A DNA stretch of 64,000 nucleotides from Rebecca billardiae RCC1528 (Eukaryota; Protista; Haptophyta): contig OZ251224.1 of assembly GCA_965240325.2 (NCBI GenBank), positions 496,001 through 560,000 of the forward strand, written 5' to 3'. Shown here one piece after another: positions 2,018 to 55,716 of the stretch. Each line of letters begins with the position of its first letter. Position 1 is the stretch's first letter. The notes beneath the pieces are model-generated. The model searched no databases. It was not told the origin of the DNA and saw only the letters and a list, made by a program, of their open reading frames with translations. The position numbers and the translations under genes were made by a program.

Positions 2018-4194
2018 TCAGCAAAACGCCCGCACTTCGCTGAGTTCGCTGCTGCTGTTCAACAGCGCATCAGCCGTTGCTGGGCTCCTGCGGCTACGCC
2101 TACGATCACGACGGGGCACCTTGGCTCGCTGCCAGCTGGCGGCCACCGTGTGCAGTGCTTCCCGCCACTGTGGACGCGCTCGCTCCTGCTCGCCTAGCTC
2201 AGCCAACGGCTTGCGACGCCGCTGCTCCGCGGCGAGCAACTCCTGGCGCTCACCAGCGAGTCGTCTGTGCGCTGCTGTCCGACGTCCCTTTGCTGGCTTC
2301 GCGCCGGGGCGCTGGGCCAGGGCTGCAGATCCACCGGGTGCTTTGGGCGCAGGAGAATCCAACGGGCCCAGCGACGAGCCCACGCGGAGCATGACGACCT
2401 CGCTGCACTCGGGGCACAGCGGGTTGATCTCCTTCGCCACCGTGCGGTACCCTCGGTCCATGAGCTCGAGGACGAGCGCCGCCACCTCGCGACGGCCCTT
2501 GTGCGCCACCAGGCTCGGAGGCACTGCCGGCGCGCCGCGCGTGTGAATCTCAAAGCTGAGCTCGAGCGGCAGCAAGTGCGCGGGGAGAGTCAGGAGCTCA
2601 CGACTGATCAGATCCCACTCGAACCCTTCGATGTCGAACTTGAACAGGTCGATGGGGCGCTCCGTGTGGTTGAGCTCGGCGAGCACCTGCGTGAGCCGCT
2701 TGAAGTGCTCCGGCGTGTACGCGCCCAGAGTGTGCGAGTACACGCTGGCAGTGCGCACGGCGGAGGCGTTGGGCGGGAGCTCCCCGATGCACCATGGGTG
2801 GAAGCGGAACGTCGTGCCCCGAAGCGCCTGCGAATCCGGCGCGACCGTGCAGTCGAAGGCGTGCACCTCGCAGCCGTGCTGAGAGAAGCCCTCCTCAAAA
2901 GCCGCGTCGTCCGCAATGCCCATGCCGTACACGACGCATCGGCGCGCGCCGGGGGCGAGCTTGGGCTTCAGGACGCGCTTGCCGTCCTCAAACTCGCGAG
3001 GCGCCATGACCAGGGCCCGGTGCAGAGGGAGTGCGATGCTCACGTCGACGAATCTGAGCGTGGCGGAATCGTTCAGCCGCGGGGCGGTGACAGCGCGCAC
3101 GAGCCTTGCCCGGGCGCTTAGCGCGCAGTTGCCAAGCGCTTCATCGAGGAGCGACGCCTGCGAGAGGCTCGAAGCGGCTGCATCGCCCGCAAACGACTCG
3201 CCGAACGCCGTGACGACAAGCGCCGCCATCGCTGAGACCGCCATGACTGTGACCGTTGCACCACTGTTACAGAATGACAACGAATACGTATCATGATCGG
3301 CCTGTACTGTGGCCTGCACAGGCCGCCCCCAGTCACCGGTGGCACTCGCCCCCCCGCTTGGACACCCCCCGGGGTGTAGCCAGGGAGGTGCCAGCAGCAG
3401 CGCCGGCGCTCAAGCACCACCCGTCGCGCCGCGTGGCGACCCCCCCGTGGTGGGGCGTGGCCCGCCGGCCAAACGGAGCCGCCCGGATTCCGATACCCTG
3501 CAGCAGCCTCTCTGGCCTGGCGCCCCCGCTCCTGACCAGCCCAGACCCCCGACGCCTGCGGTGCCGGAGGCCCCGCCCCTACGCAAGTCTGCCAGGCTGT
3601 GCCAGCGCCGCACGCGCGGCGCGGCCATGACTGCAGCTCCACACCGGCAAAACGACGCTTCGCGCGCACCCGGCGCGCCGACACAGCCTGCCCGGGAGAA
3701 GCCAGCAGGGGCTGACCTTGGGCAGCAGCCATACATGCAGGCCAGCATGAGCGGCGGGGTGGCATCAGAGCCGGCCCCGGCCCGCAAACGCAAACAGCCG
3801 GACGCCCCGGCCCACACAGCTGATGCGCCAGCAAACCCTGCTCCGGGCCACAGAACCCTGCCGCCGGCTTTGAGGCCGACACGCCACACTGGGGCACATA
3901 TCACCTGAGGGCCGGGCCTTCTGTGTGATAAGCTACCCCAGTCATGCCGCTTGATACACACCTTCCCCAACTGACAGTGGGGCTCTACATTCCCTACTAC
4001 ATCCTCATCCTGTCGGCGCGCTGTCGCATCGGCGCCCAGTCGGCGAGTTCGGACGACGACGTTTTGTGGACGACGGTGGGGCGAGGACGACGGGCGCTGG
4101 CGCGCCGCGAGGCGGCCGCAGCCCTCATCCAGGCCTCGCAGGCGGACGGCTGAACGAATTTTTCCGGCGGCGCTACCATCGGCGACGGCTTCAT
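2018..4194 (-). CDS. Membrane-anchored SAM-dependent methyltransferase (Methyltransf_22/METTL24-like); proposed exons 4194-4001 and 3263-2018
   Basis: Motifs CVVYGMGIADDAAFE, CEVHAFDCT, FHPWCIG, IDLFKFDIEGFEW, ELSFEIH, KEINPLCPECSE. Hydrophobic anchor VTVMAVSAMAALVVTAF. The domain call is firm; joining exon 1 is an inference. Confidence 0.8.
3264..4000 (+). mobile_element. 737-bp insertion resembling a 5'-truncated non-LTR retroelement 3' end; forms a putative GT..AG intron on the minus strand
   Basis: Fewer CpG/CGCG runs than the flanking exons. Pro-rich ORF tail 3309-3908, then a UTR-like stretch ending CTACATTCCCTACTAC. On the minus strand it starts GTAGTAG at 4000 and ends TAACAG at 3264. 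Confidence 0.55.
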
Positions 4195-4222
4195 GGGCGG
4201 TGACAGTTGGCGGGCGTCAATC

Positions 4223-4268
4223 TCGCCTGCCTGAGCTGTGTGCGTCTCTTATTCTTAGTAAACTGTAC
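4223..4268. repeat. 46-bp dispersed motif, copy 1
   Basis: TCGCCTGCCTGAGCTGTGTGCGTCTCTTATTCTTAGTAAACTGTAC; 45/46 identical to 55671-55716. Confidence 0.95.
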
Positions 4269-4947
4269 TGTAGACGCCGATCTTCGGGTAGTAAACAACG
4301 ACGTTGAGGGCGCACGGCCCTAGTTGTCGCGTTCTGACACTGTTCCAGTAGTACTTATTCAGTCTTCACGAATCGTGCAGCCCACGAGTCACGTCGTGAG
4401 CCGACAGCAGCCGGCTTGTGTGACTAGTCACCGTAGTGCCCCCGCGAGCAGCAACTGCCTGCTGGCGCAACTGCCCGTGCTCCCGGTCTGATAATCGGCC
4501 GTGCTCACAGCTCAGTGATCCAGTACTTCACGAATCGCGCAGCTCATCGTGAGCAGCAGCCGGCTTGTGACTTGTGTCGCGACACGGTCGTACCGCGGTC
4601 CGACGGTGCATGAGCCGTGACGGTCAGCCGCCGAGGCCGCCATCATCGATCATGCTGCTCTAACAGCTCAGTGGCAGTGTATAACGGCGACGCAGCGAGG
4701 CAGAGCGGCGCGCAAGATGATGTGACTCATCGACTGCATCAATACTTCCAAGCACACTCGGTCTCGCGGGTCTGTAGTTAGCCGCCTCACAGCTCGTCTC
4801 CACAACGGGGCTGCCGAGCCCGCCGCCGAGCCAGCCCGACCGGGCACCGGGCACCGGTCACCCAGAGCCCTTGAATCACCGCTGTCAGCTGCCTGGCTCA
4901 CTGCCACTCCGCCACCCACAGCCACCGGTTACCGCCGCCACAATCAC

Positions 4948-5143
4948 CGCTACAGTCCCCCCGTCGAGCCCGCCGCTACAGTCCCCCCCGTCGAGCCCGC
5001 CACCGGCACGAGTGCCGGCGTGAGGCACAGCAAACCATTCGTGCGAGCCACGCGGAGGATGGCGCTCGGGGCAAAGTGAGGCACACGCAAACCATTCGTG
5101 CGAGCAACGCGGAGGACGGCGCTCGGGGCAAAGTGAGGCACAC
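4948..5143. repeat. Two small tandem duplications (~27 bp x2 and 57 bp x2)
   Basis: CGCTACAGTCCCCC(C)GTCGAGCCCGC twice at 4948-5001. GCAAACCATTCGTGCGAGC...AAAGTGAGGCACAC starts at 5030 and 5087. Confidence 0.85.
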
Positions 5144-6284
5144 TGCCGCTGCGCAGCGGGCCGAGCGCGGCGCATCCTCCGCGGACCGACTCGGCCGAAG
5201 CCGCGCCTCGCGCCGTGCGCAGCCTCACCGCCCTCCTCCGCTGATAGTGCTCGCTCCGCTCCGCTCGTGAGCTCCGAGCGCCGAGGCAAACACTCAAACA
5301 GACCTAGGTCATGGGTTCAAAACCAGTTTCCAGGTCTCTCTTCGGAGAGCGTGCGACGATGAAGGATGGCGCGGCAACCTGCCACCGTGAGCCTTACGCA
5401 CGTTAAAACAAATAAACTGTACCTTCAGCTTGCTGCATACATTAATATCAGATTAATTAGAAGGGGCGTATGATTTGAAATACGCTTTACCGGTAATATT
5501 CCATCCAAAAATTAATATGAGCTGTCGCGTTTTGCGCGGCCTCGCGGGGCGCATCGCCGTGTTCGACGTGCCTTCACTACGGGGCGGCTCCAACGCGGAT
5601 TCCTTGCTCGTAAATAATCTCAGAAAGGATACTGCGGTTGGCACATAGGCGCCCCGCGCGGGAACGCCGGTTCGGGCCTACCCGCGCAATGACATCTCGT
5701 CGCTTTTATGAAACTGAGGAGTGAACGACTATCAAGAGAATGTTCGATATCTCAGACCTTGTTTGCAATCTGTTCAACAGGCGAATATTGACTATCAGAA
5801 AGGTAGCTGGAGATGTCTTTATCCTATTTGATTTCGATTTCTTCTATTACTTACTATCGTTAAAAATAAGGGGCAGTACAAACGCAATCATTGGCAGCGA
5901 TATCCACTCATGTGCGCTTGTAACACCTAAATCCACCTACAAAAAACCCAAATCCTGCGCGCGCATCCTCTTTTTGATTTTGCGGAGCACGTGCGCCGCC
6001 GCCCCCGGCTTTCGCTCACGCTCAGACCTTTCGGGGGGGGGCGTGCGCCATAATAATGGAAATTACTGTATTGGTCGCGTGTTTTTGATATGCCGATGAT
6101 TCAGGAGTAAGCTAGGCGCGAATTCTGTGTCGTGAGTCGTGACGACATGGATGCGCGCGCATCGCCGATCGTCACGTGGCTCCGGTGGACAGGCTCGCTC
6201 GTCACGCCGGGCTGCGGCGCGCTGCACTTAAGTATAGCGCGTCTCGGCGCGCCGAGTAATTAAAAATAATACAACAATACGTCA

Positions 6285-7429: not shown

Positions 7430-10400
7430 CTGTGCCTGCAAAGCGCCGCGCTGCGCGCCGACCTGCTCGAGCGCCGTGTTGAGCTCGTCCGCCAGCTCAA
7501 AGTCCTCCGCGCTCACTGCCGCCTCGATCTGGCCCTCCAGCGAGCTGGCGCGCGTGCCGAGCGCGGCCAGCGCGCGCGCGGCCTCGGCCGGGTCGGGCGG
7601 CGGCGGCGGCGCGGGGGCAGCGGGGGCGGGGGCGGGCGCGGCGGGCGCGGCGTCGCTCGGCGCGGCCGCGGCGGGCACGGCTGCGGGCGCCGCGCTCGCG
7701 TCCCCCGCCGCCGCCTCCTCCTCGCCCTCCTCCCCCGAGCTCGCACTCAGCTCCCAGCCCGCGTCGGCGCCGGCGTCGGCGTCGGCGCCGGCGGCGTCGG
7801 CCGGCGCGGCCGCGCGCGCGGCCGCGAGCGCGTGCGCCACCGCCGCCGCCTCCGCCGCCGCCTCTGAGGCTTGTGCCTCGGGGGGCAGCCCGTGGCGCTC
7901 GCGCAGCGCCGCGGCCTCCGCGCACACCGCGTCGCGCTCGGCCTCCAGGTGGCACGCCTCCACCTCGTTGCCTGCCGAGGCGGGCAGCGCGGCGCAGGGC
8001 GACGGGTGCTGAGCGGCGCGCGCGCGGCGGCGCGCGCACCGCGCGGCGCGGCGCGCGGTGCGCGCGCCGGTGCGCGCGCGGCTGCTCGCGCGCGCGCGCG
8101 CGCAGCGTACCGTCACGGCGCGCGCGGCGCATCGCGCGCGCGAGCAGCCGTGCGTACGCGCGCATGTGCGCGCTCAGCGCCACGTCCGACTCGCGCGAGC
8201 TCCGCTCCAGCCGCCCCTCCAGCGCCGAGCGCTCGGCCGCGAGCGCGTCGAGGCGCGCGGCGCACGCGTCCGTGCGCGCGCGCGCGTCCGCGTGCCGCGC
8301 GTCTGCGTCGGCCGCGCGCGCGCTGAGCTCCTTGGCCTGCGCGGCGAGGCGCGCCGCCTCCTTGAACGCGCGCTGCCCGACCGCCAGCCGCTTCGCCTCC
8401 TCCACCTCCGGCAGCGCGCCGCGCGCGTCCGACGCCGCGCGCTCGTGCTCGCGCGCCTCAGCGCGCGCGGCCGCGAGCGCGAGCGCCTCCGCGGCCTCCG
8501 CGTGCGCCAGCGCCTGCGCCGGGCGGCGCGCGGCGGCGGAGGGGGGCGGGGGCGCGGCAGGGCGCGAGCAGGGCGGCGGGGGGAGCGGCGCGCGGGCACG
8601 CGCGCGTGGGCGTGCGCGCGCACGCCGGCCGCGGCACGCCGCGTGTGCGCGCGCACGCCCGCGCGCGCGCAGCGCAGCGCGCGCGCGCGCACCTCGACGC
8701 GCGCGCGGCCCTCGGCTGCGGCGGCCTCGGCCGCGTGCGCGCGTCTCTGCGTGGCCGCCCACAGCGCGCCGAGGCGCTCGGCGGCGGCGCGCGCGCGCTC
8801 GGCGACGCGCACCGCCTGCGCCGCGCGCGCCGCCGCGCGCTCCGCCTCCGCGCGGTACGCCAGCACGCCGCCCTCCGCCGCCTCACACGCCGCGCGCCGC
8901 GCCGCGAGCGCGGCGCGCGCGTCGGCGAGCGCGGCCGCGTGCGCCTCGGAGCGCGCGCGCTGCGAGCCGAGCTCGGCGCGCTGCAGGTCGAGGCGGTGGA
9001 GCTGGCGCGAGAAGGGCGCGCGCGCCTGCGCGACCGCCGCGTCCGCGCTCGCCAGCCGCTCCTCGCACGCCGCCGCCTCGCCCCTCGCCGCCTCGAGCTC
9101 CCGACTCAGCCGCTCACAGCGCGCGCGCAGCTCTGTGAGTTGTGCTGCGCACGCGGCCCGCTCGGCAATGGCGGGCTGCGCGCCCGCCTGCACGCGCGCG
9201 CCGAGGGCGGCCTCCTCGGCGGCGAGGTCGTCGAGGTCGGAGGCGAGGCGGCGCTCGTCGCGCTCCAGCCGCTCCTCCTGCACCGCCAGCCGCTCCGCCT
9301 CCTCCGCCACCGCCGCGCGCTCCGCCTCCGCCGCCGCGCGCCGCGCGCCGACGTCGCCATCGAGCACGTGCGCGACACGCGCCGCGTGCGCGCGCCGCGC
9401 GCCGCACTCGGAGTCAAGCAGCGCGACGCGGCGCGCGGCGCAGGCGTGGAGGTCGCGCGTCGTCTGCGCGAGCTCCGCCTCCGCGCGCCGCTGCGCCTCC
9501 GCCGCCTCGCGCAGGCTGCCGTTCAGCGCGTCGGCGGCGTCGTACTGCTCCGCGGCAGAAGCGTCGGACTGCGCGCGCTCGATGGCGAGGGTGCGCTCGC
9601 GCGCGCGCCGCGCGGCCTCGGCGGCGCGGCGCCTGCGCTCGGCGCAGGCGCGCTGCTCGTCGCGCAGCGCGCTCAGCTGGGCGTGCACGGCGCGCAGCGC
9701 GCCGCCCAGCGCCGCGTCGGCGCGCTCGAGCTCCGTGCCGCCGCCCGCCGCCTCCGCGCCGCCGGTGTCAGCGCCGCCGGCCGACGGTTCGGCTTCGGCC
9801 GCGGCCGTGGCCGCGCCAGCGCCCGGCGTGGGCGCGCGCGGCGCGCGCTGGCCGCCGGGGCCCGCGCCGCCCGCGGCGCCGGCGCCGCCCGCCATCAGCG
9901 CGGCCGGGTGCGGGTGCGCCGGCGGCGCCGCCCGTCGGCCCTCGGCGCCGCCGCCGTCCGCGCCGCCCGCGCCGGCCGCCGCCGAGCCGGCCGCCGCCGC
10001 CGCCGCCGCCTCCGCCGCCTCCGCCGCCGCCGCCGCCGCCAGCCCAAAAGGGCCTTCGGCGCGCGCGGCGGGCACGGGCGTCGGCGCGCCGCTGGAGTGC
10101 GGCGAGGCGGTGGGCGCGGGCGTCGCGGGCGTGTGCGGCGCCCTGCGCAGCGTGAGCCCACCAAAGATCGAGCCCATCGCGCCGAGCAGCCCCCCACCAG
10201 CCGAGCCGGGTGCGTCCAGCGCCGCAGCGGGGTGCGCGGGCGCGTGTGCCGGCTGCGCGCCGAGCTGCGCGCCGCGCGGCGGCGGCGTGGCGCTGGGCCG
10301 CGCCTGCTCGGCGAGCGCGGGCGGCGGCGGCGGCGAGGCGGCGTGCGAAGGTGCGCCGCAACCAGCCGGCGCGCTCGGGTGCTGGGGTGCGTGCGCGCAC

Positions 10401-55670: not shown

Positions 55671-55716
55671 TCGCCTGCCTGAGTTGTGTGCGTCTCTTAT
55701 TCTTAGTAAACTGTAC
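55671..55716. repeat. 46-bp dispersed motif, copy 2
   Basis: 45/46 identical to 4223-4268. Confidence 0.95.

Follow-up and report, generated by a model that had tools for sequence, protein, structure and literature searches.

A young 5'-truncated LINE copy in the 5' flank of a predicted methyltransferase gene of Rebecca billardiae, with a GT-AG pairing that probably reflects chance and not a gained intron

Introduction

Chimeric first exons derived from transposable elements and transcripts from antisense promoters exist, for example those arising from the antisense promoter of human L1, which sits in the 5'UTR of full-length elements. Non-LTR retrotransposons of the APE-type LINE class leave 5'-truncated copies through target-primed reverse transcription. 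Introners are transposable elements that create introns on insertion, and non-LTR retrotransposons make up about 5% of the confidently categorised introner families (PMC12130899). An introner makes up essentially the whole of its intron; splicing uses sites at or close to the termini of the element or within the target-site duplication, and the exon that it interrupts is a pre-existing one of the host.

An event of this kind had been proposed for a 64,000-nucleotide stretch of the genome of the haptophyte Rebecca billardiae RCC1528 (contig OZ251224.1, positions 496,001 to 560,000 of the forward strand; hereafter the window, whose first letter is position 1). In an initial annotation, the ends of a retroelement-like insertion at 3264-4000 were read as an in-frame intron between an upstream ORF and a methyltransferase gene. 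The locus resembles introners in having a transposable element between a possible GT and a possible AG beside coding sequence, antisense to the gene. It is unlike them in several respects: the element (3311-4267) and the proposed intron (3264-4000) are not coextensive; the upstream "exon" is itself LINE sequence and the insertion lies 66 bp before the first ATG, whereas introners interrupt a host exon; and the donor GTAGTA departs from the host consensus GTGCG(C/T), while the acceptor CAG fits. Chimeric first exons of the L1 antisense-promoter type would be the right category if a transcript with a 4001/3263 junction existed, that is, a LINE exon spliced to a host gene; in contrast to the L1 case, the LINE in the window keeps only its 3' end.

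Results and Discussion

Features of the locus

The features discussed below, in window coordinates, are as follows.

2018-3244, minus strand: methyltransferase gene, single exon, intact, 408 aa, PF13383 Methyltransf_22, beginning with a hydrophobic leader
3245-3310, minus strand: 5' flank from the LINE junction to the start codon, 66 bp, unique, relatively AT-rich
3264-3265, minus strand: proposed AG acceptor (aaCAG/T), in the unique flank, 47 bp outside the LINE junction
3311-4267, plus strand: 5'-truncated LINE copy, the last 957 bp of 10,544, antisense to the methyltransferase gene, delimited by repeat homology
3311-3908, plus strand: C-terminal tail of the LINE ORF (ORF listed as 3309-3908; stop codon 3906-3908)
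3909-4267, plus strand: LINE 3'UTR, 359 nt, ending in TAGTAAACTGTA at 4267
3997-4194, minus strand: antisense ORF, the proposed upstream exon, 65 codons, wholly within the LINE 3'UTR
3999-4000, minus strand: proposed GT donor (GTAGTA), 267 bp inside the LINE
4268-4271, plus strand, and again 3307-3310: CTGT repeat, tentatively a 4-bp target-site duplication
4274-5305, strand not given: older repeat unrelated to the LINE, directly upstream of the insertion point; its copies, found at many loci, are 82-91% identical

The LINE family and its copy in the window

Searching the organism's own genome with 3264-4000 returned 41 matches, all of which reach the last base of the query (737) with starts that vary (48, 70, 80, 99 and onwards to 449), and query bases 1-47 were covered by none of the 41. 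Comparison of a wider stretch with the fetched loci placed the homology at 3311-4267, with 97-100% identity to at least 40 other loci, instead of at the borders 3264-4000 given in the initial annotation. Below 3311 the other copies continue and are mutually alike, which indicates that the window copy is truncated at this point, and one other copy is 100% identical to it over 960 bp, which argues that the window copy is very young. On the high-coordinate side every copy ends in TCTTAGTAAACTGTA, beyond which the flanks diverge. The 5' junction of the LINE lies 66 bp upstream of the methyltransferase ATG at 3244. The retroelement origin of the stretch was thus borne out, in the form of a repeated, 5'-truncated non-LTR retrotransposon antisense to the gene.

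The BLASTN-type search that had been suggested for full-length copies did recover them, RT-bearing and with the same 3' end. Two such copies, at C12:1140155-1150698 and on C5, each measure 10,544 bp and share 99.8% identity. The full-length element has a single ORF of ~3,360 aa, whose end at element nt 10182 corresponds to window position 3905 and which encodes an Exo_endo_phos domain (residues 395-628; E 5.3e-7, 30 bits, cut-off 24.5) followed by RVT_1 (residues 1105-1388; E 5.9e-25, 88.6 bits, cut-off 29.6; Pfam). The ~800 aa before the endonuclease and the ~1,550 aa after the RT gave no Pfam match, and among solved structures the RT is nearest to the R2 and L1 ORF2 proteins. When a full-length copy and its flanks were compared with themselves, a 124-bp internal tandem duplication came up, but neither LTRs nor terminal inverted repeats. 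The genome of 72 Mb contains the 3'-terminal 22 nt of the LINE 1,008 times and the reversed control 0 times, and the copies have a constant 3' end and variable 5' ends.

Judged by its sequence characters, the repeat is an APE-type non-LTR (LINE) retrotransposon. Like APE-type LINEs that leave 5'-truncated copies, it has the endonuclease N-terminal to the RT in one ORF, is without terminal repeats, combines a fixed 3' end with varying 5' ends and is present in hundreds to thousands of copies. Unlike them, the family is very large, with 10.5 kb and one ORF of ~3,360 aa, lacks a poly(A) or microsatellite tail, and shows no clear target-site duplication at the two full-length copies. From this anatomy, the window copy would have been inserted by target-primed reverse transcription from the fixed 3' end of the LINE, its 5' truncation being attributable to early termination of reverse transcription. 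When the element's own last bases are counted, the repeat around the window copy extends to 9 bp (CTGTACTGT; 3302-3310 and 4263-4271), which is tentatively consistent with annealing of the nicked target to the 3' end of the RNA. Elsewhere in the window, a second LINE-tail stub of ~45 nt is found at 55672-55715 (plus strand), in a short gap between ORFs.

The insertion had also been described as carrying an antisense ORF tail that ends in a CTACTAC tract, taken as the antisense of the retroelement's own tail. The ORF tail is present on the plus strand (3309-3908), but the tract (3994-4000) lies 86 nt past the stop codon at 3906-3908 and is internal to the 359-nt 3'UTR, which ends only at 4267.

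The methyltransferase gene, its paralogues and its start codon

The minus-strand ORF 3319-2018 of the ORF listing holds the Methyltransf_22 protein; the first ATG of this frame is at 3244, the second at 3229, and the coding sequence runs from the former without interruption, so that the disruption of the gene that had been considered as a fallback did not materialise. In a Pfam profile search the gene at 2018-3244 matched PF13383 Methyltransf_22 with E 8e-13 and 49 bits, the whole-protein score being above the curated gathering cut-off of 22.4 bits. The protein is like the Methyltransf_22 proteins of Pfam in having the domain above the curated cut-off, and this domain is also found in homologues that are 37-53% identical to it; it is unlike the Pfam proteins in its C-terminus, a low-complexity basic tail of ~100 aa. 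No exact or near-identical record of the protein was found in the public protein and contig collections searched. A DNA search of a phage collection, which has no bearing on this locus, gave no hit.

Regarding the start codon, the 66-bp flank (3245-3310) contains no ATG in the methyltransferase frame, and on the upstream side the flank beyond the LINE has no ATG in any of the three frames, each of which closes 17-32 codons from the junction. Since all three upstream frames are closed without an ATG, ATG 3244 would have been the first available start already before the insertion, whatever the change at the target site. Two methyltransferase paralogues are present in the genome, C36 at 77% identity and C25 at 50%, and both align from the same hydrophobic leader, i.e., from an equivalent start. 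In the C25 paralogue the frame is closed by a stop 13 codons before the ATG; the C36 paralogue has ATA at the position of the window ATG 3244 and the second ATG (3229) in common with the window gene. Translation would accordingly be predicted to start at ATG 3244 (or 3229), giving a protein that begins with the hydrophobic leader. A start at a downstream ATG, which had been offered as the other fallback, fits these data and is the better reading, compared with a gained intron. Distant homologues (e.g., P0003) have a short cytoplasmic tail followed by a membrane anchor, and the predicted proteins indicate that this layout, the one proposed in the initial annotation, occurs in the methyltransferase family, but not in the close relatives.

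A three-way comparison assigned 22 changes to the window lineage and 14 to the C36 lineage, and the methyltransferase ORF is intact, with neither lineage-specific acceleration nor any sign of decay. The dN/dS between the window gene and the C36 paralogue is fairly high, at 0.71, which implies that constraint on the methyltransferase is weak overall. Public contigs yielded no transcript or allele of the window gene, only a counterpart of the C25 paralogue on the genomic Logan contig ERR14847148 (L023, 3,919 bp), which is 98.9% identical to the C25 locus with 23 mismatches and 14 gaps; this divergence of ~1% indicates that a second strain or haplotype exists in public reads.

The check for an empty site that had been recommended was carried out on the paralogue flank and on copies of the older repeat, and no empty site was found in either. 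Used as a proxy, the 5' flank of the C36 paralogue loses DNA similarity within the leader-coding region, and in the older-repeat copies the homology reaches no further than 4274 and misses the insertion point by 3 bp. Upstream of the paralogues there is no LINE homology past one 11-mer. This 11-mer equals the last bases of the LINE (AGTAAACTGTA) and lies ~97 bp upstream of the C36 paralogue ATG in sense orientation (L018, G000:C36:721965-726095); it could represent a minimal stub or a preferred target motif, or be due to chance.

The antisense ORF and the proposed splice sites

The components of the proposed intron are all present by direct reading and in the ORF listing: an ORF from ATG 4194, a GT at 4000, an AG at 3264 and a join that keeps the frame. 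Opening at ATG 4194 and closing at TAG 3999-3997, the antisense ORF has the 3' end ...AGG ATG AGG AT/GTAGTAG; the acceptor context is ...gtaaCAG at 3270-3264, then T GGT GCA ACG GTC ACA GTC ATG; and excision of 4000-3264, whose 737 bp give a remainder of 2 on division by 3, joins both frames.

The ORF had been taken as part of the gene; it is LINE sequence, present in other copies of the element, and owing to its position within the 3'UTR it exists in any LINE copy longer than ~270 bp. It is intact in young copies and frameshifted in 7 of the 16 other copies that span the region, several of these seven sharing the same shifted reading, which means that the ORF is absent from one entire subfamily. 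Pfam returned no match for it, and it does not resemble the N-termini of the methyltransferase homologues. The GC content at its three codon positions (GC1/2/3) is 0.62/0.65/0.83, a codon-like periodicity that extends over 65 codons only in a GC-rich UTR and is an unexplained but weak signal. The GC3 periodicity raised the question of a functional gene on the antisense strand of the LINE 3'UTR, a reading rejected because the ORF is frameshifted throughout one subfamily. The antisense ORF is judged from these comparisons to be a chance ORF in a GC-rich LINE 3'UTR.

Reference introns were taken from the gaps between neighbouring exons that match the Pfam models of actin and HSP70 in the window's genome, and for each gap GT/GC...AG pairs were kept if both frames were open and the profile coordinates continuous. 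The 10 homology-supported introns obtained in this way are 96-234 bp long with CG-rich interiors; their donor is GTGCG(C/T) in nine and GTGCTC in one, and the acceptor is CAG in all ten, mostly GCAG. The initial annotation was therefore right that normal introns of this genome are shorter, CG-rich and of a GTRCGC donor type. Measured against these introns, the GTAGTA donor disagrees with the consensus GTGCG(C/T) at every one of positions +3 to +6 and the proposed 737-bp intron is three times as long as the longest of the ten; the proposed acceptor aaCAG does fit the CAG of the genome.

Joining the antisense ORF to the methyltransferase at every combination of GT and AG in the stretches concerned left the frame open in 32 of 96 cases, exactly one third and thus the chance rate, so the in-frame fit carries no information. 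With the first exon and the donor inside the LINE and the acceptor in the unique flank, the anatomy is not that of an intron made by insertion into an exon, and because the 5' truncation of the LINE is variable, the element cannot supply a fixed acceptor. Against the claim that the ends of the insertion form an in-frame intron speak this placement of its parts, the off-consensus donor, a frame fit at the chance rate, the loss of the antisense ORF in older subfamilies and the paralogues, which begin directly with the hydrophobic leader. Intron gain at 4000-3264 is, as far as the sequence can tell, not supported; at most, the upstream ORF would be a LINE-derived first exon.

Alternative readings of the locus

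On the combined evidence, the locus very probably consists of an intact single-exon gene starting at ATG 3244 and, in its 5' flank, a young 5'-truncated LINE, with the GT-AG pairing arising by chance. A truncated LINE copy (3311-4267) would have been inserted into the methyltransferase 5' flank at the edge of the older repeat, and the in-frame pairing of GT(4000) with AG(3264) would be fortuitous, with no intron gained. For a transcript that starts upstream of 4194, uses the antisense LINE 3'UTR as a first coding exon (4194-4001) and has 4000-3264 spliced out, the predicted product would be a methyltransferase with a retroelement-derived cytoplasmic tail. The open and in-frame 4001/3263 join, the good CAG at 3264, the tail and anchor of distant homologues such as P0003 and the GC3 of 0.83 in the antisense ORF can be cited for such a transcript, but the join is no better than the in-frame rate expected by chance, the donor GTAGTA is off GTGCG(C/T), the 737 bp are three times the longest of the 10 checked introns and the paralogues are without any such exon. 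Moreover, its first exon is element sequence found in all young copies, which would make the event an exonisation and not an intron gained within an existing exon, and the insertion, at 100% identity to another copy, is too young for selection to have shaped a new exon; the reading is extremely improbable. It is just as hard to credit that the antisense 3'UTR of an abundant LINE should have served as a ready-made promoter and first coding exon, spliced 4001/3263, and so provided a new N-terminal tail within a very short time.

The LINE could also lie within a transcribed 5'UTR, with transcription starting in the older repeat or beyond and ATG 3244 kept as the start codon, the LINE being either retained or removed as a non-coding intron; removal would use other, better splice sites, such as the GTGCGC near 3670. 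Before the insertion only ~69 bp separated the older repeat from ATG 3244, so the original promoter or transcription start may sit in the repeat, and consensus-like GTGCGC motifs do occur on the minus strand inside the LINE, near 3670. A retained LINE, however, would give the 5'UTR many upstream ATGs, and this arrangement is considered improbable. Somewhat more room has to be given to the idea that the insertion cut the methyltransferase off from its promoter, which would make the gene a silent and very young pseudogene with an ORF that has yet to decay. With an extremely recent insertion 66 bp from the ATG, the intact ORF is uninformative on present expression; the C36 paralogue (77%) could cover the function, and the dN/dS of 0.71 points in the same direction. 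The window lineage nevertheless shows no excess of changes (22 against 14), and silencing seems unlikely. With respect to expression, the insertion may be neutral, may have displaced the promoter or may have resulted in the LINE being carried in the 5'UTR.

A young LINE fragment beside a gene is an ordinary event, and the value of the locus lies chiefly in its warning for annotation. Gene finders run on this very GC-rich genome could arrive at an equally false model with two exons, since long ORFs often arise by chance and a third of all GT/AG pairs keep the frame. As an insertion the copy is also clean and can be dated, with 66 bp between it and a start codon. Were the intron reading true, the locus would illustrate how retroelements alter gene structure, which has already been documented elsewhere (PMC12130899).

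Older repeat and other neighbouring sequence

The older repeat at 4274-5305 contains short tandem duplications. Its distal part (~5104-5292) is present at dozens of loci as inverted pairs ~830 bp apart, resembling the two arms of foldback or TIR elements.

Downstream of the methyltransferase, at ~640-1940 in minus-strand reading, there are two long blocks, each in two copies: one of ~190 bp at 1940-1750 and 1385-1200, and one of ~300 bp at 1740-1440 and 975-640.
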